Shown here: positions 155 through 10,064 of the stretch, one piece after another
Numbering within the stretch: the stretch's first letter is position 1
Layout: each line of letters opens with the position of its first letter
Assembly (NCBI RefSeq): GCF_000737315.1
Contig: NZ_JMCB01000036.1
Coordinates: 1 to 10,066, forward strand
DNA length: 10,066 nt
Reading direction: 5' to 3'
From: Hyalangium minutum
GTDB taxonomy: Bacteria; Myxococcota; Myxococcia; Myxococcales; Myxococcaceae
The notes under the pieces: generated by a model
The model's database searches: none
Told to the model about the DNA's origin: nothing
Seen by the model: only the letters and a program-made list of their open reading frames with translations
Translations under genes and position numbers: made by a program

Positions 155-340
155 TTACAGGACCGCCATGAGCAACGCTTCGGCCTCCACCATGACGACA
201 TGCTCCGTGTTCTCCCCCCAGGACAACGGGCTCCTCCTGCCACACCGGCAGCTGACGGGCACACTGGGGGCACATGCGGCCCAACAGGGGCAATCTGCTT
301 GGAGGCAAGCGGCCTGAGTTCCCCGGTCTCCCAGGGCTCA
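155..340 (-). pseudogene. Possible frameshifted remnant of a small hypothetical gene, divergent from the transposase
   Basis: Removing one G near position 280 and one from the G6 run (plus-strand C6 at 214-219) joins three frames into ...LASKQIAPVGRMCPQCARQLPVWQEEPVVLGENTEHVVMVEAEALLMAVL*, with TAA at 157..155. The product looks protein-like and has a CxxC, but no family was recognised and the reconstruction is manual. Confidence 0.2.
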
Positions 341-404
341 CGAGAACCCCGTGGGAGGCGGACAGGAGCGTGTGCCCTGGCAAGGTGTGGCAGGGGAGGA
401 GCGG

Positions 405-1312
405 GTGGAGGAGCGCGGGTGGGCGTACCGGCGGAGGCAGCCGGAGGGGACGGTGCTGTACGAGGCGGTGAGGGATAACCTGGCCACGCTGCTGGAAGAG
501 GCGAGCGAGGTGGGGCGCGGCCTGCCCCGGTACGTGGAGCGGGACGTAAGCCCGGTACCTGGAGTGCGGAGTGCTGGCGCACGGCTTCGCGCGGGTGCGC
601 TGCGAGAGTGGCAAGGACGAGTTTCTCGTCGCCTTCTGGTGCAAGGGACGAGGGGTGTACCCCTCCTGCAACGCGAAGCGGGCGCATGTGACGGCAGTGC
701 ATCTGGTGGAGCGGGTGCTGCCGCATGTGCCCTACCGGCAGTGGACGCGGTCCTTTCCGCATCGGGTGCGGTGGGTGCTGCTCAAGGACGTGGGGCCCCT
801 CTCGGACGTCCTCACCGTTTTCCTGCGCGCGGGGCACGCCCTGCTGCGGCGGAGGGCACGGCGGCAGAGCCTACGTGGCGGGCAGGTTGGGGCCGTGTCG
901 TTCATCCCGTTCTTCGGCTCCGCCTTGCAGGTGACTCCTCATTTCCACTCGCTGGTACCGGACGGCGTCTTCGTGCCGTGAGAGGGCGGCGTGCGCTTCG
1001 AGCCGTTGCCGCCGCCCACGCAAGCAGAGGTGGAGAAGTTGCTGAAGGGGGTGCGGCACCGGGTGCTGCAGCTGGTGGAGAACGGAGCGGATGAAGCAGA
1101 GGAGGCCGCGAGAGGACTTTTGCCGAGTAGCTGAGGAGGACGTTGGACTTCGACGTGTTGGCCTGCGTGAGGTGTGGAGGCAGGCTTAAGGGTGTTGGCG
1201 GGCCGTGAAGGGAGCACGAGGGGTGCGCGCGATTGTGAAGCACCTGGGCCTGGCCACAGCAGGTGCGAGGCGAGCCCCGGCGCGAGGGCCACCCCAGGCA
1301 GCGTGGTGTTGA
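405..1312 (+). pseudogene. IS91-family transposase pseudogene (zinc-binding domain plus HUH domain)
   Basis: GTG at 405 follows GGAGG. It reads [25 protein letters not shown], has a +1 frameshift at ~546-555, and continues [48 protein letters not shown] (HUH motif). There is a premature TGA at 979-981 and an internal deletion at ~1080. Frameshifted C-terminal pieces follow ([17 protein letters not shown]; ARGPPQAAWC*, stop 1310-1312). Confidence 0.88.
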
Positions 1313-1515
1313 GGCGCTCAAGACAACCCACAGGCCCAGCTCAGGCTCTTGCCGCGCCCTGATGGGAGGGGGGCCTGGGCAGCAGTGTGCCCTATGGGGT
1401 GCTCGGCCCCCTCCACGGGCCTGGCACACAGCTCGGGCGGCTCCCGTCCGCGGCCCTCCTCGGCCCCTGCGCTCCAGCCCTCTCCTTCAACCGGCCTCCC
1501 ATTTTTCTGATGCTC
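1079..1515 (+). repeat. Direct repeat copy 1 (437 bp), 3' end of the IS91-like element
   Basis: Aligned by eye to 8305..8742: identical except for one G indel (G4 vs G5 near 1396) and three substitutions (1443, 1473, 1483). Confidence 0.97.
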
Positions 1516-1538
1516 CCCCCAAGCCTGAGTTCGAAGCA

Positions 1539-4247
1539 CTACCGCGGAGGGGGCTGCAGTCCTTCTATCGGCCGGAGCTTCGATCTGGGAGGCAAGAGTT
1601 GCCGCAGTACGTCGGGGCGGGTGCTGGCGGCGAGGGTAAAGCGGGAGCGCCAGCCGTTTTCTCGGAGCTGGTCGAGCCACCGCAGCGCTTCGTGGGCGGA
1701 CAGGCCTCTCCGCATCAGGGCGAAGTAGAGGTGGGCATACTCGTCCGCCAGCGAGGTGGCGAAGGTCACCGGGTCATCCGAGTTGATGGAGACGAGCAGC
1801 GGAGGAGGGGCCTCGGGAGGGCGAGCGGCTGGGGCTGCTTCATGTGCCACGGGCAGGTGCGGCCCCAGCGCCATCGCGGGGTGGTGCTCCAGCCCGAGCA
1901 TGTTCAGGACGAGCAGGTTGCTGGAGGGGTTCGACTCGACAGTGATCTCCCGCTCACGCAGCAGGGACCGCAGCCAGGCCTGCGCCTCCGCAGCCATGGC
2001 GGTCTCGGCGGGGTGGTTATGCACCTCGACGAGGCGCTGGCCCCGGCGGAACACGCCTGCATCCGTCAGGTGCTGCCAGACGAGGCGCAGGACGCGATCC
2101 ATCCGGGCCCTGGGCTCGGGCTCGTCGGGGAAACGCAGGTACTCCAGCACCTGAGTGTCATGGCGATAGCGTCTGGCGAGGAGAAGGAGGTCGAGCTCGA
2201 CGCGCGAGAGGCCCAGCAACTCGCGCGCGAGGGCGGTGGCTTCGCTGCGCACGCGTTCGACTCGCGCGGGCTGGGTGGGCAGCTGGCCCTGGCCATAGCG
2301 ATCCAGCTCCCAAAGCAGATCGTCCAGGCGCTCTTCCGCGGGCTGGACAGCGACGGGGTGCAGCTCGGCCAGCCGTGGGGCGTCCGGGCCGAGTGCGAGC
2401 CCATGTCCGATGCGGTCCCCGGTCTGGAGGATTTCGGACTCGAGCAGCTCGTGGATCCGACGCAGGCCCTCCACGAGCCGGCGGAACTCCTCTCCCGCGT
2501 GGTAGGTGATGTGGAGTTCCGTCGCCTCCCATTGGGGGGCGAGCCGGCGCAGGCGCGAGGCTGTCGTCCGGGACTGACGCCGGACCTGTTGCAGGAGCGG
2601 TACGGTGACCCAGGTGGGCGTGGCGAGCTCGGCGCTGGCGACATCCAACCCTCGAACGACGAGCAGCAACTCGGGGTGATGACTGAGCGCGGTGCGGATG
2701 GCCAGGGCCTGCCTTCGTCGGCCCAGGAACCAATCGCCGAAGCGGAAGCCGGAGCTGTTACCGGAAGGATCCGCGTGGAGGCGTGCGTGCCCGCCACGGC
2801 CCTGGGAGAGTTCCCGCTCCTTGATGAAGTGGAAGAGCAGGGCGCTCTCCGGGCGCTCCGGAGCCGCCATGTGGGCCTGGGCGAGGTTGCGCGCTTGGTC
2901 ACGGATGGAGACCCAGTCCGGCTCGGGCGTCGCGCGCATTTCGAGGGAGCCGAGGTGCAGTCCTCGGCGCGTGTGCCGCAGAGCACTCTCGGCGAGGTGC
3001 TCTTCCAGGGGCCCCCGCAGGGCGGAGAGCCGGTTGAAGTGGACCTGGAACCAGTCGAGCCCCGCTGTCCCCGGCTCTTCGATGAGAAAGGCATGGGCCT
3101 GACAGCGGACGCGCTGGTACTGCCAGAAGAGGAGTGCGAAGCCTGAGTCTTCTTGGCCCTCTCGCAGCAGATAGCGAAGCGCGCGGGTGGTGAAGCGCGT
3201 CTCGGTGAAGGGACGCCCCTCGATGGAGGGCAGCCAGGCATGGAGCGGATCCTGCGCGAAGAGGGCCGACAGTGAGGAATCGCGGGCCTCCCGGCGCGAG
3301 CCAGTGGGAGGCGCGCCCGTCAGCGCTCGGTAGACCCGCTGGAGGACGCCGGGCGACGGCGAAGGATCCTGCCTGCGGCCGGAGGGGCGCTGGAGGTAAT
3401 CGAGGGCGTGCGAGTACTCACGCTGGAGCGCGGCGGCGCCAGAGGGCCAGGAAGCGAGGCGGGCAAGCCGGGGCCCTGTGCTCGCCAGGAAGGCGCGCAG
3501 GTCTCCGCGCTCTCCATGGAGTTCGCGTGCGCGCAAGAAGGCCGCGAGGAAGAGTCGGGCGATGGCCGCCGCGAGGAGCTTGGATGCAAAGCCCATCGCG
3601 TCGCCAAAGGGATACGTGTCCTTGGGCCGCAGCTTTTCGGGCCAGGCGTCGCGGAACCACCCCATCCAGACGCTCCAGAGGGTGGGAAAGGAGTAGGCGG
3701 CACCTCCATGGAGGTGGGTTTCGGAGACAGGCCGGCCGAGCACATCGCGCAGGTGGGAGGTGGGCAGATGCACCTCGTCCCCGGAGGGCTCGTCCTCGCT
3801 CGGCGCGTGGAGGCCGGCAATGAGTAGATCCGCAGGGACGCGGAGGGAGAGCCACCGCCAGTGGGCGGCGCGTTCAGCCCGTGTGATGCCGTCACCGGCG
3901 GGATCGGGCCTCAACTGAGGATGATGACCATCGCTCGCCAGATACCGCTCCGCGAGGCGGCGAAGGTACTCGGCGAGGGAGAGCCCCGATGCAATCGGAG
4001 GGCTTCCGGGCTCCACCGCGAACCATGAGTGCTCGCGCAGGGCCCGGAGCGCCTCCAGGGAGAGCCCCTCCGAGCGAGTGCGCAGGTGTGCCTCCAGGTC
4101 CGAGGCCAGCTTCTGGGTTGGCCCATCGAGGACTCCCGCGGCGGCGTGTCCCAGTTGGAGCGTTCGGTGAGCATGGGCGGACAGCGAGGCGAGAGGCCAG
4201 GCCTCGGCCTCCGCCACGAGCCGCTGGTAGCGCCCGTCCCGACCCAT
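1539..4247 (-). CDS. rdrB: Adenosine deaminase-fold (amidohydrolase) protein, RADAR RdrB-like, ~902 aa
   Basis: Complete set of ADA motifs: ETHLH (H178/H180), YHAGEE (H583/E586), RIGHG (H615), ESNPSSN and SINSDDP (D824/D825), with a ~400-aa insertion after HxH. The start was moved from 4343 to ATG 4247, which lies 1 nt after the upstream stop and has GGAG 7 nt upstream. The rdrB label rests on motifs, size and the neighbouring ATPase. Confidence 0.85.
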   Translation of the reverse strand: MGRDGRYQRLVAEAEAWPLASLSAHAHRTLQLGHAAAGVLDGPTQKLASDLEAHLRTRSEGLSLEALRALREHSWFAVEPGSPPIASGLSLAEYLRRLAERYLASDGHHPQLRPDPAGDGITRAERAAHWRWLSLRVPADLLIAGLHAPSEDEPSGDEVHLPTSHLRDVLGRPVSETHLHGGAAYSFPTLWSVWMGWFRDAWPEKLRPKDTYPFGDAMGFASKLLAAAIARLFLAAFLRARELHGERGDLRAFLASTGPRLARLASWPSGAAALQREYSHALDYLQRPSGRRQDPSPSPGVLQRVYRALTGAPPTGSRREARDSSLSALFAQDPLHAWLPSIEGRPFTETRFTTRALRYLLREGQEDSGFALLFWQYQRVRCQAHAFLIEEPGTAGLDWFQVHFNRLSALRGPLEEHLAESALRHTRRGLHLGSLEMRATPEPDWVSIRDQARNLAQAHMAAPERPESALLFHFIKERELSQGRGGHARLHADPSGNSSGFRFGDWFLGRRRQALAIRTALSHHPELLLVVRGLDVASAELATPTWVTVPLLQQVRRQSRTTASRLRRLAPQWEATELHITYHAGEEFRRLVEGLRRIHELLESEILQTGDRIGHGLALGPDAPRLAELHPVAVQPAEERLDDLLWELDRYGQGQLPTQPARVERVRSEATALARELLGLSRVELDLLLLARRYRHDTQVLEYLRFPDEPEPRARMDRVLRLVWQHLTDAGVFRRGQRLVEVHNHPAETAMAAEAQAWLRSLLREREITVESNPSSNLLVLNMLGLEHHPAMALGPHLPVAHEAAPAARPPEAPPPLLVSINSDDPVTFATSLADEYAHLYFALMRRGLSAHEALRWLDQLRENGWRSRFTLAASTRPDVLRQLLPPRSKLRPIEGLQPPPR

Positions 4248-4248
4248 G

Positions 4249-7200
4249 TCACTTCTCCGAGTTGGCCAAGCCCATATGCACGAGCCAGGGGTGCCGAGGC
4301 TCCTGGAACGCAGCATCAATCTCGTTGAGCATCTGCCGAGCATGCTCTGGTGAGTGCCCAGAGTCCGTCAGCCGAGCGAGCCGGTGTGCCTGCAGTGCCT
4401 GCGTGTCGATGCCGAAGTTCCGGTCCCACTGGGTGAGGATGAGGTCGGCAAACGTGACGGGCAAGCCAGACTCGGGCGCGGCGAGCAGGGGGAGTCGCGC
4501 GGCCCAGTCCCGGAGTTCCTTCGTCCGGGGCTCTTGTGTGGGAAGGGCCTTGAGCAGCGTGTGGAGCGACTCCACCTGCTGCACCCAGCGGTCTTGGGAG
4601 AAGGGTTCGCTGATGGGGGGGGCCAGATACGCACGGTGGAAGCACATGAGGGAGCCTTCGATCAGCCACAGGGCGCGTGGCACGAGCTGATCCGAGACAG
4701 GGAGTTCCCGGTTCATGTTCGGCTGCGCATGTCCCGACAGCCAGCTCTCTTCGAGTACCTCCCACTCCCACAGCGTCCGCCATGCGATGGTGGGGAAGAC
4801 CCAGAACTCACTCTTTTTCCAGGAGCCCTTGAGCAGGTGCCACCAGCGGGGAGCTGGAGAGGGGGACGCGGCGGCGTCGGGTTGCTCCATGGCGAGGTCA
4901 TGGGCCACACGCAAAAAAGGCTCGGCGTCATTGGGAACGCCCGCAACCAAGCCGGCTCCTGTTTGACGAACCTGGGTGAAAGCCAGGTAGAGATTCTCGG
5001 TGATGGCGGAGTCGCGCCATCGCGCTTTCGTGAAGGACTCGTCCACACTCTTACGGAAGCGCTCAATGAACGGGGTCTCTTGCAGGACCACCCGGCCCTC
5101 GCGGAGCTGGAGCTTGGGCTCGAGGTCGCGCCTATCCCTCTCGTGGGTCCAGGTCTTCCAGAGCAAGGACAGGACCTGCGCTGCCTCTGGGGGCTTGGGT
5201 GCGAGCCGGACCTTCTCGCTTAGAGTCTTCAACAGCCAGAGCGGACTGAGCGCGAGCAGGCCCTGTCGGAAATTCGTGAAGTAGGTCGCAAGGGATGCGA
5301 AGGGAGTTCGAACGGAGCGGAGTTCCTTGAGCAGGTTGTGGACTTCGGGTTCCCGTAGTCCGCTCGGAGCGCGGAATTCTCTCTGGATGCGCTGGATGAA
5401 GGGGTGTGTCTCGAAGGCATCGTCAAGCTTGCGGAGCAGGGTCTCCAGTTCGCCAGGACCGATGGTGGATGAGTTGTACAAAGGTGTCTGGGACAAGGCC
5501 TCCTGCAGGCGCCTGCGTCGCTCCCAGCGCAATCCATTCGTGATGTCGTTCCAGCTCGCGCTGAAGATCCCCTCCAGGCAGTTGATCAGTCCATCGCTGA
5601 AGAGGAGCGAAAGGCCGCTTTCCGGGGCAGCGAGCAGTCCGAGGTGTTGCACCCACGTGGATATGGCGTTGTCGCGAGCAGTGCCCGTCATCTCCCGAAG
5701 CGCTCCAAGTTCTCGCTCCAGCCAAGTCCAACTCTGCTTCTCACCCAGATGAACGCTCTCGACAGGCTGGCGACGCGAGACGTGGATGGCGAGTCGCAAG
5801 AACAGCCACGCGAAGTCATCCGGGCGGTGGGTGGGGGGGGCGGGCCATGAGGTCGGAGTGGGCGCGTCTTCCAGTTCCTGGCGCCAGGCCTGTATGAATT
5901 GGGTCAGCTCCTGGTGCGTTCCCCAGTCCGGCAAGGGCCAATGCACCATGAAGGCCGCAGCCAGATCGTCGATGCGCGCTTCCGATCCCGAGGATTGAGT
6001 GCGGGCAACGAGCGAGGACATCGCAGGGAAGGCGGAGAACAGTGTCTCGCGAGATTCCGGCTCTTTGGTAGGGATGCGCTTCCACCGGATACGGGTGAGC
6101 GCACGTTCCACTTCTCGGCTGCTGATGGTGGGACCCGTGGAGTGGCCGTGAGGAGCGGCGGTGCGGGCAAAGTCGTTCGCGAGTCCATATGCCACCACGA
6201 GTCCATCGGACAGCCAGGCCATTTCATCAATGCCGCGTGTCTCAGGGTTCCACTCCGGCATGTACATCCTTAGGCGCGTCGGGTAGCCCAGGGAGATCAA
6301 GAAGTCCTCACCGATGGACCAGGGCAGGAACTGGGTTTCCAATTCGGTGTTGAACTTCTGAGCGTCGACGTGGAGGGCTGCTTCCCCCGTCTCGGTCTCC
6401 TCCAACCAGATGAGGTTGCGGAGCAATGCCCTGTCGGAGCCACTGCGCTCCGAAGCTTCGACAGCAAGCTCCCAGAGCTTCATGAGGGCGCGGGCGGTTC
6501 GGGGAAATTCTGTCCCGCTGCTGGTGAGGAGCTCATTCAGTGTGGACTTCAAGGACACCAGGTCCCGGAGCCTGTCGGGGAGGACCTGCGCGAGGCCGAG
6601 AGACCCCTCCAGGAGCAGCTTGGAGTCGAGGAGGCCTGTACCTCCTGGCATCTTGAACTGCTTCAACTGCTCCTGAATAGGCTCGCTGCGAGGGAAGGAG
6701 AGCCTCCGGCGCACCGAGATGGGAGGCAGCTCACACCGCTGTGGCGGCGGAATGACCTTGTCGTAGATGGCCCTGGGAAGGTTCCTGAGGGTTTGGGGTA
6801 GCGACTGCTCGGGGATCCTCTCCCTACGCGAGAGGTCGAGCAGGAGCGAGTCCTCGAAGAGCGTACTATCGCCGGTCATGAGGAAGGCCAGTCGCGGGTG
6901 ATGGATCTTGCGCACCAGCGACAGCAACTCCGGCGTCCTTCGCGGGTTCATGTCCGCGTCATCAATGGCGAGCAGAAAGAGGGGGTAGTGGCCCTTGTCC
7001 CAGCGGCGCCAGCGTCGATAGTCATCCGCGAGCGCGTCGAGGAAGTCCCGGAAGGCTCCGGCCATCCGCATCCGATGCCGCTCCCCATGCTCGGCCTCCA
7101 GCGCATAGGCCTCGGGGTCGAGCCGAGTCTTTCGGATGTCCGGTCCATCCCAGCCCAGGGTCGTGACGCGGACGAACTCCCGCCACTTCTTGCGCGAGGG

Positions 7201-7722
7201 CTTCTCCTGAGCCTCTTCCCCTTGCCATGGCGCCGACGAGGAGGGGAGCGCCACGTCCTCCCCACCCTCCAGCGCGGCGACCACCCGCTCCAGGTGCCCG
7301 ACGAGGTGGAGAAGCAGGTTGGTGGTCTCGGGCAGGGGCTCGAGGTCGACCAGACCCACTGGCACGATGGGGTAGCCCGGCTCGATGTCCCAGGATTCGG
7401 GCCGGAAGTCGCGCAGAGTCTTCACCTTGTTCGTCGCGGCCTTGTTGTAAAGGTTCAACAAGGTGACGAGCAGGGCGGACTTCCCAGAGCCCCGGCGCCC
7501 ATCAATGAGGACCGTGGGGTTGAGGCGCTTCTTCTCGATGAGAGGCAGATAACCGTGGGCCCTGCTGCCCTTGGCGGGGGAGAAGGGCGCCTCGGCTAAC
7601 TCGCGGAGGAAGCCGGTGGCACGCGTCCCCGCCTTGAGCTGATCTTCGGTGAGCTCCTTGGGCAGCAGGATGCGTGCTTCGGTGCGTGGCTGGAAGGGAG
7701 ACTTGGGGTTCGTGTTGGACAT
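4249..7722 (-). CDS. rdrA: Large P-loop ATPase, RADAR RdrA-like, 1157 aa
   Basis: Walker A in VLIDGRRGSGKS, Walker B in FLLAIDDAD, then FLMTGD and YDKVIPP..R motifs and a long helical C-terminal region. The ORF is uninterrupted and sits directly upstream of the deaminase. No clear RBS precedes ATG 7722. Confidence 0.82.
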   Translation of the reverse strand: MSNTNPKSPFQPRTEARILLPKELTEDQLKAGTRATGFLRELAEAPFSPAKGSRAHGYLPLIEKKRLNPTVLIDGRRGSGKSALLVTLLNLYNKAATNKVKTLRDFRPESWDIEPGYPIVPVGLVDLEPLPETTNLLLHLVGHLERVVAALEGGEDVALPSSSAPWQGEEAQEKPSRKKWREFVRVTTLGWDGPDIRKTRLDPEAYALEAEHGERHRMRMAGAFRDFLDALADDYRRWRRWDKGHYPLFLLAIDDADMNPRRTPELLSLVRKIHHPRLAFLMTGDSTLFEDSLLLDLSRRERIPEQSLPQTLRNLPRAIYDKVIPPPQRCELPPISVRRRLSFPRSEPIQEQLKQFKMPGGTGLLDSKLLLEGSLGLAQVLPDRLRDLVSLKSTLNELLTSSGTEFPRTARALMKLWELAVEASERSGSDRALLRNLIWLEETETGEAALHVDAQKFNTELETQFLPWSIGEDFLISLGYPTRLRMYMPEWNPETRGIDEMAWLSDGLVVAYGLANDFARTAAPHGHSTGPTISSREVERALTRIRWKRIPTKEPESRETLFSAFPAMSSLVARTQSSGSEARIDDLAAAFMVHWPLPDWGTHQELTQFIQAWRQELEDAPTPTSWPAPPTHRPDDFAWLFLRLAIHVSRRQPVESVHLGEKQSWTWLERELGALREMTGTARDNAISTWVQHLGLLAAPESGLSLLFSDGLINCLEGIFSASWNDITNGLRWERRRRLQEALSQTPLYNSSTIGPGELETLLRKLDDAFETHPFIQRIQREFRAPSGLREPEVHNLLKELRSVRTPFASLATYFTNFRQGLLALSPLWLLKTLSEKVRLAPKPPEAAQVLSLLWKTWTHERDRRDLEPKLQLREGRVVLQETPFIERFRKSVDESFTKARWRDSAITENLYLAFTQVRQTGAGLVAGVPNDAEPFLRVAHDLAMEQPDAAASPSPAPRWWHLLKGSWKKSEFWVFPTIAWRTLWEWEVLEESWLSGHAQPNMNRELPVSDQLVPRALWLIEGSLMCFHRAYLAPPISEPFSQDRWVQQVESLHTLLKALPTQEPRTKELRDWAARLPLLAAPESGLPVTFADLILTQWDRNFGIDTQALQAHRLARLTDSGHSPEHARQMLNEIDAAFQEPRHPWLVHMGLANSEK
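4255..4258 (-). promoter_or_regulatory. Shine-Dalgarno site for the deaminase, embedded in the last codons of the ATPase
   Basis: Minus strand reads ...tcGGAGaagTGAcATG: stop, 1 nt, start. This suggests translational coupling. Confidence 0.65.
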
Positions 7723-7849
7723 GGCCCGGGTCGGTCAGACAGCACGGGCACGGACTGAAGCCGTGCTCTAGGTGTGGCGTGGCCCGGATTCTGGGCGCAG
7801 GCGAGCAGGGGCGGAAGTTTCTGGTGGGCGCGGTGGGTGACACTGGAAC

Positions 7850-8071
7850 TCAGTAGCCGGGCGGCACCTCGTTCCCGCTAAGCCGTGCGAAGCCGTGCGC
7901 CAGCACCCCGCACTCCAGGTACCCGGCGAAGTCCCGCTCCATATACCGGGGCAGGCCTCTTCCCACCTCGTTCGCCTCCGCTAGCAGCGTGGTGAGGTTG
8001 TCCCTCACCGCCTCGTACAGCACCGGCCCCTCCGGCTGCCTCCTCCGGTACGCCCACCAGCGCTCCTCCAC
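7850..8071 (-). pseudogene. 5' fragment of a second IS91-family transposase, inverted relative to the left copy
   Basis: GTG at 8071 follows GGAGG and reads [62 protein letters not shown]. Homology stops at ~7884 and the frame closes at TGA 7852..7850. About 89% identical to 405..593 (about 20 differences in ~188 nt, counted by hand). Confidence 0.9.
7880..7899. repeat. Perfect 10-bp tandem duplication (aagccgtgcg x2) at the truncation point of the inverted transposase fragment
   Basis: 7880-7889 is identical to 7890-7899. Confidence 0.85.
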
Positions 8072-8136
8072 CTGCCCCTCCCCAGCTACACCTGTGCTCC
8101 CACGAACCTCCCTGGAGCACCGTGCGCCCCTGGTTC

Positions 8137-8188
8137 TGTCTCCAAAATGTCTCCAGGATTGGAGGGGACTCGGAGGGACAGGTGGGAC
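8137..8188. repeat. Helically phased short direct repeats
   Basis: tgtctcca at 8137-8144 and 8148-8155 (11-bp period); gggac at 8165, 8175 and 8184 (10- and 9-bp spacing). Confidence 0.6.
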
Positions 8189-8256
8189 TGCCGGGGATTC
8201 CCCCGTGGACTCGAAGTGCCCGGATTCACTCGCGATTCCTCGAAAGGCGTGTGCTC

Positions 8257-8742
8257 CCCCAAGCAGGAGAGGAGGAGGCGAGAGAGGGGAAGGAGGCAGC
8301 GGGCAGAACGGAGCGGATGAAGCAGAGGAGGCCGCGAGAGGACTTTTGCCGAGTAGCTGAGGAGGACGTTGGACTTCGACGTGTTGGCCTGCGTGAGGTG
8401 TGGAGGCAGGCTTAAGGGTGTTGGCGGGCCGTGAAGGGAGCACGAGGGGTGCGCGCGATTGTGAAGCACCTGGGCCTGGCCACAGCAGGTGCGAGGCGAG
8501 CCCCGGCGCGAGGGCCACCCCAGGCAGCGTGGTGTTGAGGCGCTCAAGACAACCCACAGGCCCAGCTCAGGCTCTTGCCGCGCCCTGATGGGAGGGGGGC
8601 CTGGGCAGCAGTGTGCCCTATGGGGGTGCTCGGCCCCCTCCACGGGCCTGGCACACAGCTCGGGCGGCTTCCGTCCGCGGCCCTCCTCGGCCCCTGCGCC
8701 CCAGCCCTCACCTTCAACCGGCCTCCCATTTTTCTGATGCTC
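8257..8742 (+). mobile_element. 3' remnant of the IS91-like element, right copy
   Basis: Reads [18 protein letters not shown] / [17 protein letters not shown] / VKGARGVRAIVKHLGLATAGARRAPARGPPQAAWC* (stop 8536-8538) across three +1 frameshifts and a TAG at 8354-8356, then the same noncoding end as the left copy. It keeps ~48 bp more transposase-like sequence (8257-8304) than the left copy. Confidence 0.85.
8305..8742 (+). repeat. Direct repeat copy 2 (438 bp)
   Basis: About 99% identical to 1079..1515; offset 7226-7227 bp. Confidence 0.97.
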
Positions 8743-8837: not shown

Positions 8838-10064
8838 CTACGGCACCATCCCCTCCAGGGCACTCTGCATGATCGCATCATGCCCGTAGTCAGGAAGGTG
8901 GATCCTGTCTGCGGGCGGCGATAGCAGCTTGCCCGCAAGCCTGCTCAAGCCGGGTTTTGTCGCGAGGCTGAGCGCGGCCTGCTGAAGCGCGATACCGGTG
9001 CGAGTCTGCGGCTGGGCAATGCGCGGGCCGAGCTTGGGCACGTCCTGCGCCTGATCCACGTAGGGCCGCATGATCCGCTCGTAGGCGGCGAAGGCTTCGG
9101 CATGATCCTCGTGTCGGCCAAGCTCGCCGGCGAGCACATAGGCACCGACAAGGGCCAAGCTGGTCCCCATGCCGCTAATGGGGGAGGCGCACCAGGCAGC
9201 ATCGCCGGTCAGGACGACGCGGCCGATGGACCACCGATCCATCTTCACCTGGCCAATCGCCTCGAAGTAGAAGTCCCTCGCATCGTCGAGGCCGGCGAGT
9301 ACGCGCGGTGTTTCCCAGCCCGCGTCGGCGAACTTCTCCTTCAGCATCGCCTTCTGCTCGTCGCGGGACAGATCCTCGTAGCCCACGGGCTTCTCTTGCA
9401 GCCCCAGAAGGGCGCGCGTGGTGCCGACATGGTCTGGGCGCAAGAAGACGCTGCGCCCTCCCGGCGCGTTGAACCAGCGGGCGACCTTCCCGTCGTTTGA
9501 GCCCTTCGGGATTGTGAAGTAGGCCGTATAGAGGTCGAGCGGTCGGCGTTTCACCGCGTCTCCGAACGCCAGCTTTCGCGTCGACGAGCCGATTCCCTCG
9601 GCGGCGATGACGAGGTCGAAGCGGCGGGTGCCGCCCTTGTCGAACGTGACTTCGACCCTGTCGCCCTTGTCGTCCAGCACGGTGATGCGATCGCCGAAGA
9701 TATATTCAGCGCGGTCGTGGCTGTGCTCAACGAGCAACCGCGCAAGCTCGCCGCGGAGGATCTCAAGCTCCGCGGTCGGTCCGTTGCCACCGAACTGCGC
9801 CGCGTCGAACTCGGCCTTGACCCTGTTCTCCTCGTCCACGAAAGCGATCGCCACCTCACCCGTTGACCGCTGCCGCACCTCATCCTCGAGCCCCATGCGC
9901 CGGATCACCTCCCGGCCCGCGCCACGGACGTCAATGTTCTGCCCACCGTCGCGGAACTCAGGTGCGCGTTCGACCACCGTGACGCTCATGCCAAAGCGGG
10001 TGAGCCACCAGGCCAGCGTGGGCCCCGCGATGCTCGCCCCAGTCACCAAGACATGCCGCTTCAT
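8838..10064 (-). CDS. FAD-dependent monooxygenase/oxidoreductase (UbiH / FAD_binding_3-like), 408 aa
   Basis: N-terminal VLVTGASIAG dinucleotide-binding motif, DLVIAAEGIGS (variant of the DG motif) and RVVLTGDAAWCASPISGMGTSLA (GD motif). The start is 2 nt from the window edge, so the upstream context is not visible. Confidence 0.92.
   Translation of the reverse strand: MKRHVLVTGASIAGPTLAWWLTRFGMSVTVVERAPEFRDGGQNIDVRGAGREVIRRMGLEDEVRQRSTGEVAIAFVDEENRVKAEFDAAQFGGNGPTAELEILRGELARLLVEHSHDRAEYIFGDRITVLDDKGDRVEVTFDKGGTRRFDLVIAAEGIGSSTRKLAFGDAVKRRPLDLYTAYFTIPKGSNDGKVARWFNAPGGRSVFLRPDHVGTTRALLGLQEKPVGYEDLSRDEQKAMLKEKFADAGWETPRVLAGLDDARDFYFEAIGQVKMDRWSIGRVVLTGDAAWCASPISGMGTSLALVGAYVLAGELGRHEDHAEAFAAYERIMRPYVDQAQDVPKLGPRIAQPQTRTGIALQQAALSLATKPGLSRLAGKLLSPPADRIHLPDYGHDAIMQSALEGMVP

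Follow-up and report, generated by a model that had tools for sequence, protein, structure and literature searches.

A RADAR-like operon lies between two copies of an IS91 terminus

How does a defence operon come to be enclosed by two copies of the same end of a rolling-circle insertion sequence (IS)? The question is raised by contig JMCB01000036.1 from the draft assembly of Hyalangium minutum DSM 14724, the whole of which (10,066 bp, hereafter the window) was analysed here. A preliminary description of this DNA had reported an operon bracketed by 437/438-bp direct repeats, and repeat searching and pairwise alignment reproduced them: the left copy spans 1079–1515 (437 nt) and the right copy 8305–8742 (438 nt), both on the + strand, with a start-to-start distance of 7226 bp. 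The two differ at only four places, an indel at 1396/8622 and substitutions at 1443, 1473 and 1483, and their first 317 nt are identical. A 437-nt repeat with 99% identity within 10 kb cannot have originated by chance. We propose that the locus is a fossil, non-autonomous composite of IS91 type that captured a divergent RADAR operon, a reading that we think somewhat likelier to be right than wrong and for which a route of mobilisation is set out below.

Each repeat comprises the last ~230 nt of a frameshifted transposase gene followed by ~205 nt of the non-coding, conserved terminus on the side of the transposition origin (ori), and translates as a decayed IS91-type transposase C-terminus (...LDFDVLACVRCGGRLK...VKHLGL...). 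The right edges (1515 and 8742) are a genuine IS end, past which about 17 further copies in other genomes have unrelated flanks. At the left edge (1079/8305), where the shared homology ends, the left copy has the junction of an internal deletion of 480 nt, marked by the microhomology AGAACGG. The repeat is thus the stretch that two defective IS copies still have in common. The ends had been ascribed to IS91/ISCR elements; the IS91 half of that label is borne out by the transposase remnant and the conserved ori-side terminus, and nothing ties the element to the ISCRs in particular.

The left copy, which we term IS-L (254–1515, + strand), was delimited by homology to its relatives and by Pfam matches within open reading frame (ORF) 571–981. 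It is made up of a left-end region, the N-terminal zinc-binding and HUH part of the transposase, the 480-nt deletion, a 3' coding remnant and the ori-side end, and its left-end homology to other group-A copies, which have the same type of left end, begins at 254–261. The ORF (136 aa) was tested for the domains Y2_Tnp (PF04986) and Zn_Tnp_IS91 (PF14319), and scored 26.0 and 34.0 bits, respectively, both exceeding the Pfam cut-offs; the intact relative L019 scores 93.5 and 61.2 bits. Intact copies have transposases of ~450–470 aa with both domains. When this N-terminal part was used to scan species-representative genomes, 110 relatives were found, of which 80 were kept; nearly all were from Myxococcota, and identity to the ORF across these ~80 loci was 84–92%. 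Compared with the intact copies L005 and L019, IS-L has a +1 insertion at 546, an in-frame stop at 982–984 and further 1-nt indels, and its 480-nt deletion, at 1079–1090, takes out the region of the catalytic tyrosine (...LCRYGARG... in intact relatives). Both copies in the window are non-autonomous, and the catalytic tyrosine pair is absent from their sequences. IS-L meets the 3' end of rdrB with its ori end.

The terminus of the element, ...CCTATGCTC or a lineage variant of it (...CCTAT followed by GCTC, ACGC or GCGT), is conserved in about 17–35 copies, and the flanks diverge immediately beyond it. The final four nucleotides of this end differ between sub-lineages and could correspond to a target tetranucleotide. 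The proposal that GCTC is itself derived from the target was unsupported, as the last four nucleotides are constant within sub-lineages whatever the flank.

The regions upstream of the transposase gene in this IS group fall into several unrelated types (seen in L004, L005, L007, L010, L011, L016, L017, L025, L033, L035, L038, L047 and L050). Many of these regions carry a stretch resembling the 3' half of a tRNA (GGCGGCGGGAATCGAACCCGCCGC), where ARAGORN identified no tRNA gene; it may be flanking DNA captured through terminator read-through.

An inverted fragment and a solo 3' module make up the right side

The right repeat had been taken for a plain IS end. It proved to belong to a mosaic in which IS-B (7883–8254, − strand), an inverted 5' fragment of a second IS91 lineage, abuts R (8253–8742, + strand), a solo 3' module. 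IS-B is 372 nt long, is truncated on both sides, and contains a transposase-upstream region and about 70 codons. It is 88–93% complementary to IS-L 383–594 and 91% identical to L040 across 7883–8254, with L043, L009, L048 and L022 also matching; in these loci the IS sequence runs on past the point equivalent to 8254, and 8254 was for that reason rejected as a true left terminus of IS-B. R has the same orientation as IS-L and extends for ~490 nt from an internal site, GC followed by TCCCCCAAGC, to the conserved ori-side end, everything upstream of these last ~490 nt being absent. The matches of many intact copies to R begin at 8252–8256. IS-B adjoins R without a spacer and does not resume to the right of it; a supposed 'spacer' at 8094–8304 is the IS-B upstream region plus the first 53 nt of R.

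The joint between the cargo and IS-B (7880–7899) contains the 10-nt unit AAGCCGTGCG twice in tandem, with AAGCC microhomology. This unit is present as a single copy in the related block of Corallococcus (L002), described below, and H. rubrum diverges at the joint directly after ...TAAGCC.

The operon moved between myxobacterial families together with its IS pieces

Among 5.8 billion proteins only two close relatives of the operon were found. In H. rubrum (L003) the operon lies at a different locus, where BLAST covers exactly window 1516–7884 at 90.5% identity and there is no IS sequence. The preliminary description had asked whether relatives carry the operon at the same locus free of IS ends; the H. 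rubrum operon is IS-free but sits elsewhere, so that this refuting case does not arise. Corallococcus sp. AB049A (L002), on the other hand, shares window 1259–8508 at about 95% identity, plus 344–604. The Corallococcus block has the same IS-L/cargo, cargo/IS-B and IS-B/R joints and the same +1 frameshift in IS-L, yet its outer flanks differ from those in H. minutum, and Hyalangium and Corallococcus are members of different families. Synonymous divergence (dS) of the operon between the two genera is 0.055–0.083, and this low value indicates a recent exchange of the block as one unit, IS-L included. The limits of the cargo match the IS joints exactly, to the nucleotide.

The operon was thus relocated along with its IS pieces, as had been supposed. 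The moved unit was previously put at 7.2 kb, which does not accord with a shared block that includes IS-L; the block moved as a unit larger than 7.2 kb, with IS-L included from at least 344. Further carriers were sought by scanning metagenome and viral contigs for the exact IS-B/R joint, which returned none, and with an 18-mer from the cargo end, which gave chance matches only.

Two further features were observed in the Corallococcus contig. An IS3/IS481-like element (L002:1–230) breaks the right IS91 remnant at the equivalent of window 8508, at the contig end. The left remnant (L002:7468–7481) is deleted for the equivalent of 605–1271, and the end of this deletion lies ~10 nt from the 8508 point in repeat coordinates.

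The flanks of the block in H. minutum are of different kinds. Positions 1–253 are unique sequence with no recognised gene and no homology to any fetched locus. On the right, and outside the element, lies a gene for a flavin adenine dinucleotide (FAD)-dependent monooxygenase (8838–10,064, − strand; Pfam FAD_binding_3).

The repeats show signs of gene conversion

Unique intergenic DNA of the block is ~97% identical between H. minutum and Corallococcus, whereas the IS-derived parts are only 87–88% identical. The two repeats in the window, by comparison, are 99% alike; each carries two derived changes, and all four lie within the last 120 nt. This indicates recombination between the repeats or a recent duplication. 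The pattern of identity is what repeated gene conversion would leave, whether the two copies converted each other or were converted by further copies in the genome, and is indirect evidence that recombination takes place at these repeats. Crossovers mediated by RecA that would delete or amplify the 7.2 kb are plausible at the present day.

Solo 3' modules with the same internal start recur in this IS group

The 10-mer TCCCYCAAGC that marks the start of R occurs 44 times in the 637 kb of fetched loci, 27 times inside contiguous IS copies. At ~14 independent sites it starts a 3' module of ~490 nt whose upstream DNA is unrelated, and at 12 of them GC precedes it. R (window 8255) is among them; others are, for example, at L028:4302, L042:7186, L051:4271, L055:495(−) and L084:8231. 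In a neighbour-joining tree the solo modules are interspersed with those of contiguous or intact copies, often beside their nearest relative, and a single propagated family of miniature inverted-repeat transposable elements was rejected on this ground.

The complete genome of Myxococcus sp. Y35 (NZ_CP143624.1; L063:4648–7148) contains an IS91 copy, then 1.5 kb with two unknown ORFs, then a solo module. The Y35 module is 99.4% identical over 495 nt, in the same orientation, and has the same internal start as R. Together with the recurrence of the modules, this example makes an assembly artefact less likely and favours a transposase-linked origin of R. The cargoes of the other arrangements of this kind show no defence theme or other common theme, and in the literature searched a recurrent internal breakpoint is not described for IS91.

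A related observation comes from H. minutum itself, where two 9170-bp stretches of JMCB01000008.1, ~100 kb apart (352597–361766, L084; 452254–461423, L085), are 100% identical. In both, an IS91 copy is interrupted by 3.3 kb of DNA (encoding an unknown 692-aa ORF and a LanC-like gene) that is flanked by a 90-nt direct repeat of the IS. The segment has either been duplicated in the genome or been assembled twice in error.

The cargo is a divergent RADAR-like operon

The cargo (1516–7883, − strand) is the 6.4-kb segment held in common with H. rubrum, and consists of two genes with 161 nt upstream and 23 nt downstream. The genes are an rdrA-like gene (4249–7722, − strand), assigned from a family profile and predicted fold and encoding a P-loop ATPase of 1157 aa, and an rdrB-like gene (1539–4247, − strand), assigned from PADLOC and PDB matches and encoding a divergent adenosine deaminase of 902 aa. 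They are co-directional and intact, with 1 nt between the rdrA stop and the rdrB start, and the adjacent co-directional pair is also found in L002, L003 and L089–L091.

The RdrB-like protein matches the PADLOC RdrB model (E=7e-22) and the RdrB structures 8FNW/8FNV in the PDB (E=3.6e-18 over residues 506–870). The HAGE-type, GDRxGH and SDDP deaminase motifs are conserved in the alignment, and the homology to RdrB is clear. Matches of the partner protein are weaker. By itself the window protein scores E=0.035 against the PADLOC RdrA models, below detection; ten of the 28 members of its family match PADLOC RdrA (best 3.6e-8), and the family profile matches the RdrA structures 8HR7/8FNT (E=7e-4). 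An AlphaFold (AF2) model of the 1157-aa protein has a predicted local distance difference test (pLDDT) score of 80, and the top 15 PDB matches returned by Foldseek are all RdrA, with E-values of 5e-7 to 7e-4 and a probability of 1.0, at template modelling (TM) scores of only 0.2–0.33. RdrA structures are the sole significant structural matches of the model. We conclude that the protein is probably a very divergent RdrA, for which the sequence evidence is weak and the evidence from the predicted fold stronger. The enclosed genes had been called a defence operon, and a RADAR-like pair is what the PADLOC, PDB and Foldseek matches indicate.

Ratios of nonsynonymous to synonymous divergence (dN/dS) are 0.35–0.51 for rdrA, as against 0.13–0.17 for rdrB. 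Divergence of the rdrA-like gene (4249–7722) from that of H. rubrum is strongly mosaic, with 73% identity around 6000–6250 and 96–99% at 7000–7500. The mosaic divergence and the higher dN/dS suggest recombination or diversifying pressure on the ATPase. G+C content is 0.60–0.65 over 4250–7250, in the rdrA-like gene, and 0.68–0.70 in rdrB and the flanks.

Some distant relatives of the operon have insertion sequences of their own nearby. In a Joint Genome Institute (JGI) metagenome contig (L089:8001–19102), an insertion sequence with a DDE_Tnp_1 transposase separates an rdrA-like gene (46% identical) from its rdrB-like partner, and a second rdrA-like gene lies downstream of the interrupted pair. 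In Corallococcus interemptor (CP102579.1), a scrap of ~150 nt of IS91 3' coding sequence (L091:14324–14471) lies ~130 nt downstream of a distant rdrB-like gene, and a 53-nt scrap of the IS-B type of upstream region (L091:17322–17374) lies 3 kb further on. Such debris being common, the presence of these scraps may be a coincidence.

Origin of the composite

IS91 initiates transposition at oriIS, downstream of tnpA, and ends it at terIS, where termination often fails; its transposition can be one-ended, and circular intermediates with joined ends are formed (PMC13181058, PMC5714925). On the reading that we favour, a truncated IS product, extending from an internal site to the ori end, would have inserted at the other side of the operon. 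Given a transposase acting in trans, transposition could then start at the end of R (8742), carry R, IS-B, the operon and IS-L leftwards, and terminate in the ter region of IS-L at about 254. The IS copies would have decayed afterwards, the repeats being kept near-identical by gene conversion or recombination. Initiation at 8742 would explain why IS-B is not continued to the right of R, and why the whole block, including IS-L, is common to two myxobacterial families.

The solo modules point to one conceivable source of the truncated product, to which we give a low probability. An internal secondary terminus (GC followed by TCCCYCAAGC, ~490 nt from the ori end) might, through premature termination, release an ori module that re-inserts close by, beyond the ori end of its parent, in a general 'leapfrog' mode of ori-side gene capture by rolling-circle IS elements, which has long been a puzzle in the case of the ISCRs. 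All DNA between the parental ter and the new ori would thereby become a new transposable unit, and an operon of RADAR type could have been captured and spread in this way.

A number of observations weigh against capture by an IS91-type composite. The tetranucleotide CTTG/GTTC was not found next to the ori-side end when the conserved ends were compared. No subterminal hairpin was detected, as DNA folds of the ends were no better than those of shuffled sequences, and RNAalifold applied to 19 ends gave no supported helix. The preliminary description envisaged an intact transposase acting in trans; there is none in the window, where both transposases are dead, and the other H. minutum copies that were recovered are all broken, the search among them giving only a 389-aa fused fragment that is present twice. 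These genomes are rich in IS91 debris, which occurs in clusters, so that some of the juxtaposition could be accidental, and distant members of the RADAR-like family, likewise operons of two genes, have ordinary chromosomal surroundings in which no IS91 flanks them. At the edges of the block, BLAST homology to Corallococcus on the left begins at 344 and not at 254, and the Corallococcus right boundary is masked by another IS and the contig end. An empty site was not found through orthologues of the monooxygenase, which have at most 80% protein identity and unrelated neighbourhoods.

We also considered whether the 7.2-kb interval is itself the transposition unit, the stronger form of the idea in the preliminary description. 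In that event, transfer from the ori of R would have read through the boundary of R and stopped at a ter-like site downstream of rdrB, and the product, a circle or a strand, would have inserted at the ori nick site of IS-L or been rescued by homologous recombination in the 437-nt segment. The period of the repeat would equal the length of such a unit, the circles formed by IS91 have juxtaposed ends (PMC13181058), and arrays of ISCR2 with tet(X) have been explained in the same way, by transposition combined with recombination (PMC7722449). The IS-L/cargo joint, GATGCTC followed by CCCCCAAGCC, also resembles the start of R, GCTCCCCCAAGCA, much as a head-to-tail ori–ter joint would. Given the relatives, however, the resemblance is weak: Corallococcus has CCCCCTCGCC and H. 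rubrum CCCCCGAGCC at this joint. The exact 12-mer occurs once in the window and a chance match arose in 39/200 shuffles, and we downgraded it to suggestive. The Corallococcus block, moreover, already holds IS-L with the same frameshift. We consider a 7.2-kb transposition unit unlikely.

Alternatively, the IS pieces could be passive debris undergoing concerted evolution, in a block that was moved within a larger segment by transformation, a conjugative element or a phage. The great number of IS91 fragments in these genomes, clustered and in both orientations, would agree with this, as would the two dead transposases, the signs of ectopic conversion in the IS parts and the cargo/IS-B joint, which is plain AAGCC microhomology and not an IS end. 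On the other hand, homology between the genomes stops within or at the IS remnants, with no larger shared island on the left, and the outer edge of R is an exact IS terminus after which IS-B is not resumed. The layout of IS, cargo and solo module recurs in another genome, with 99.4% identical modules, and megablast of 254–8742 against known plasmids and phages gave no match. We regard passive carriage as improbable. It is far less credible still that misassembly of a short draft contig created the second copy of the repeat, although the window is the whole of such a contig and the same assembly includes the two identical 9.17-kb stretches noted above. Four positions distinguish the copies, each of which shows derived states and is embedded in unique sequence of its own; in an independent assembly, that of Corallococcus, similarly oriented IS91 3' sequence lies to either side of the operon, and a complete Myxococcus genome has the same architecture. 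Capture by a composite of IS91 type thus remains the reading that we prefer, and the locus is best described as real but fossil IS-borne traffic of defence genes, not as a demonstrably active element.

Relation to known elements and implications

The composite resembles IS91, IS801 and IS1294 in its HUH/Y2 transposase with an N-terminal zinc-binding domain, in the absence of obvious terminal inverted repeats, in having functionally distinct ends with the strongly conserved one downstream of the transposase gene, and in the carriage of adjacent genes. The variable DNA upstream of the transposase is likewise as terminator read-through predicts. Unlike in those elements, both copies here are non-autonomous, and the cargo is on the ori side of the fuller copy and enclosed by a second, solo ori end. 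Further differences are that no CTTG/GTTC was seen beside the end, that no subterminal palindrome was detected, and that this IS group has the recurrent internal breakpoint.

The arrangement also recalls the ISCR elements (ISCR1 of complex class 1 integrons; ISCR2 with tet(X), sul2 and floR), in which captured genes lie beside the ori end and a second, partial copy of element-derived sequence comes after them in direct orientation. The ISCR layout has been ascribed to rolling-circle transposition with homologous recombination, and is prone to duplication (PMC7722449, PMC7707992). In contrast to the ISCRs, the cargo here is a defence operon and not a resistance gene, no integron is present, the host is a soil myxobacterium with the element in its chromosome, and IS-L keeps a transposase-upstream region common to other copies. 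As in composite transposons and translocatable units of IS26 type, direct IS-derived repeats flank the cargo and would permit its loss, circularisation or amplification by RecA. Here, however, no more than the terminal 437 nt of dead copies is repeated, and the chemistry of mobilisation would be that of a rolling circle (HUH) rather than DDE.

The RADAR anti-phage system consists of the RdrA ATPase and the RdrB adenosine deaminase (PMC9994260). The operon in the window has the same two genes in the order rdrA–rdrB and its RdrB homologue keeps the deaminase motifs. It differs in being very divergent, in having no accessory gene, and in the size of its proteins (1157 and 902 aa, against about 800–950 aa for the solved ones).

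Defence systems travel on mobile elements, and in the literature searched we found no IS91-type rolling-circle element carrying one. The three-way comparison of naked cargo, IS-flanked block and the same block in another family sets the boundaries of the cargo to the nucleotide. The operon extends RADAR to a very divergent branch centred on myxobacteria, which current PADLOC models detect only in part. The solo ori modules and the Y35 example suggest a testable route by which a rolling-circle IS might capture DNA on its ori side; if true, this route would bear on how ISCRs assemble resistance regions.

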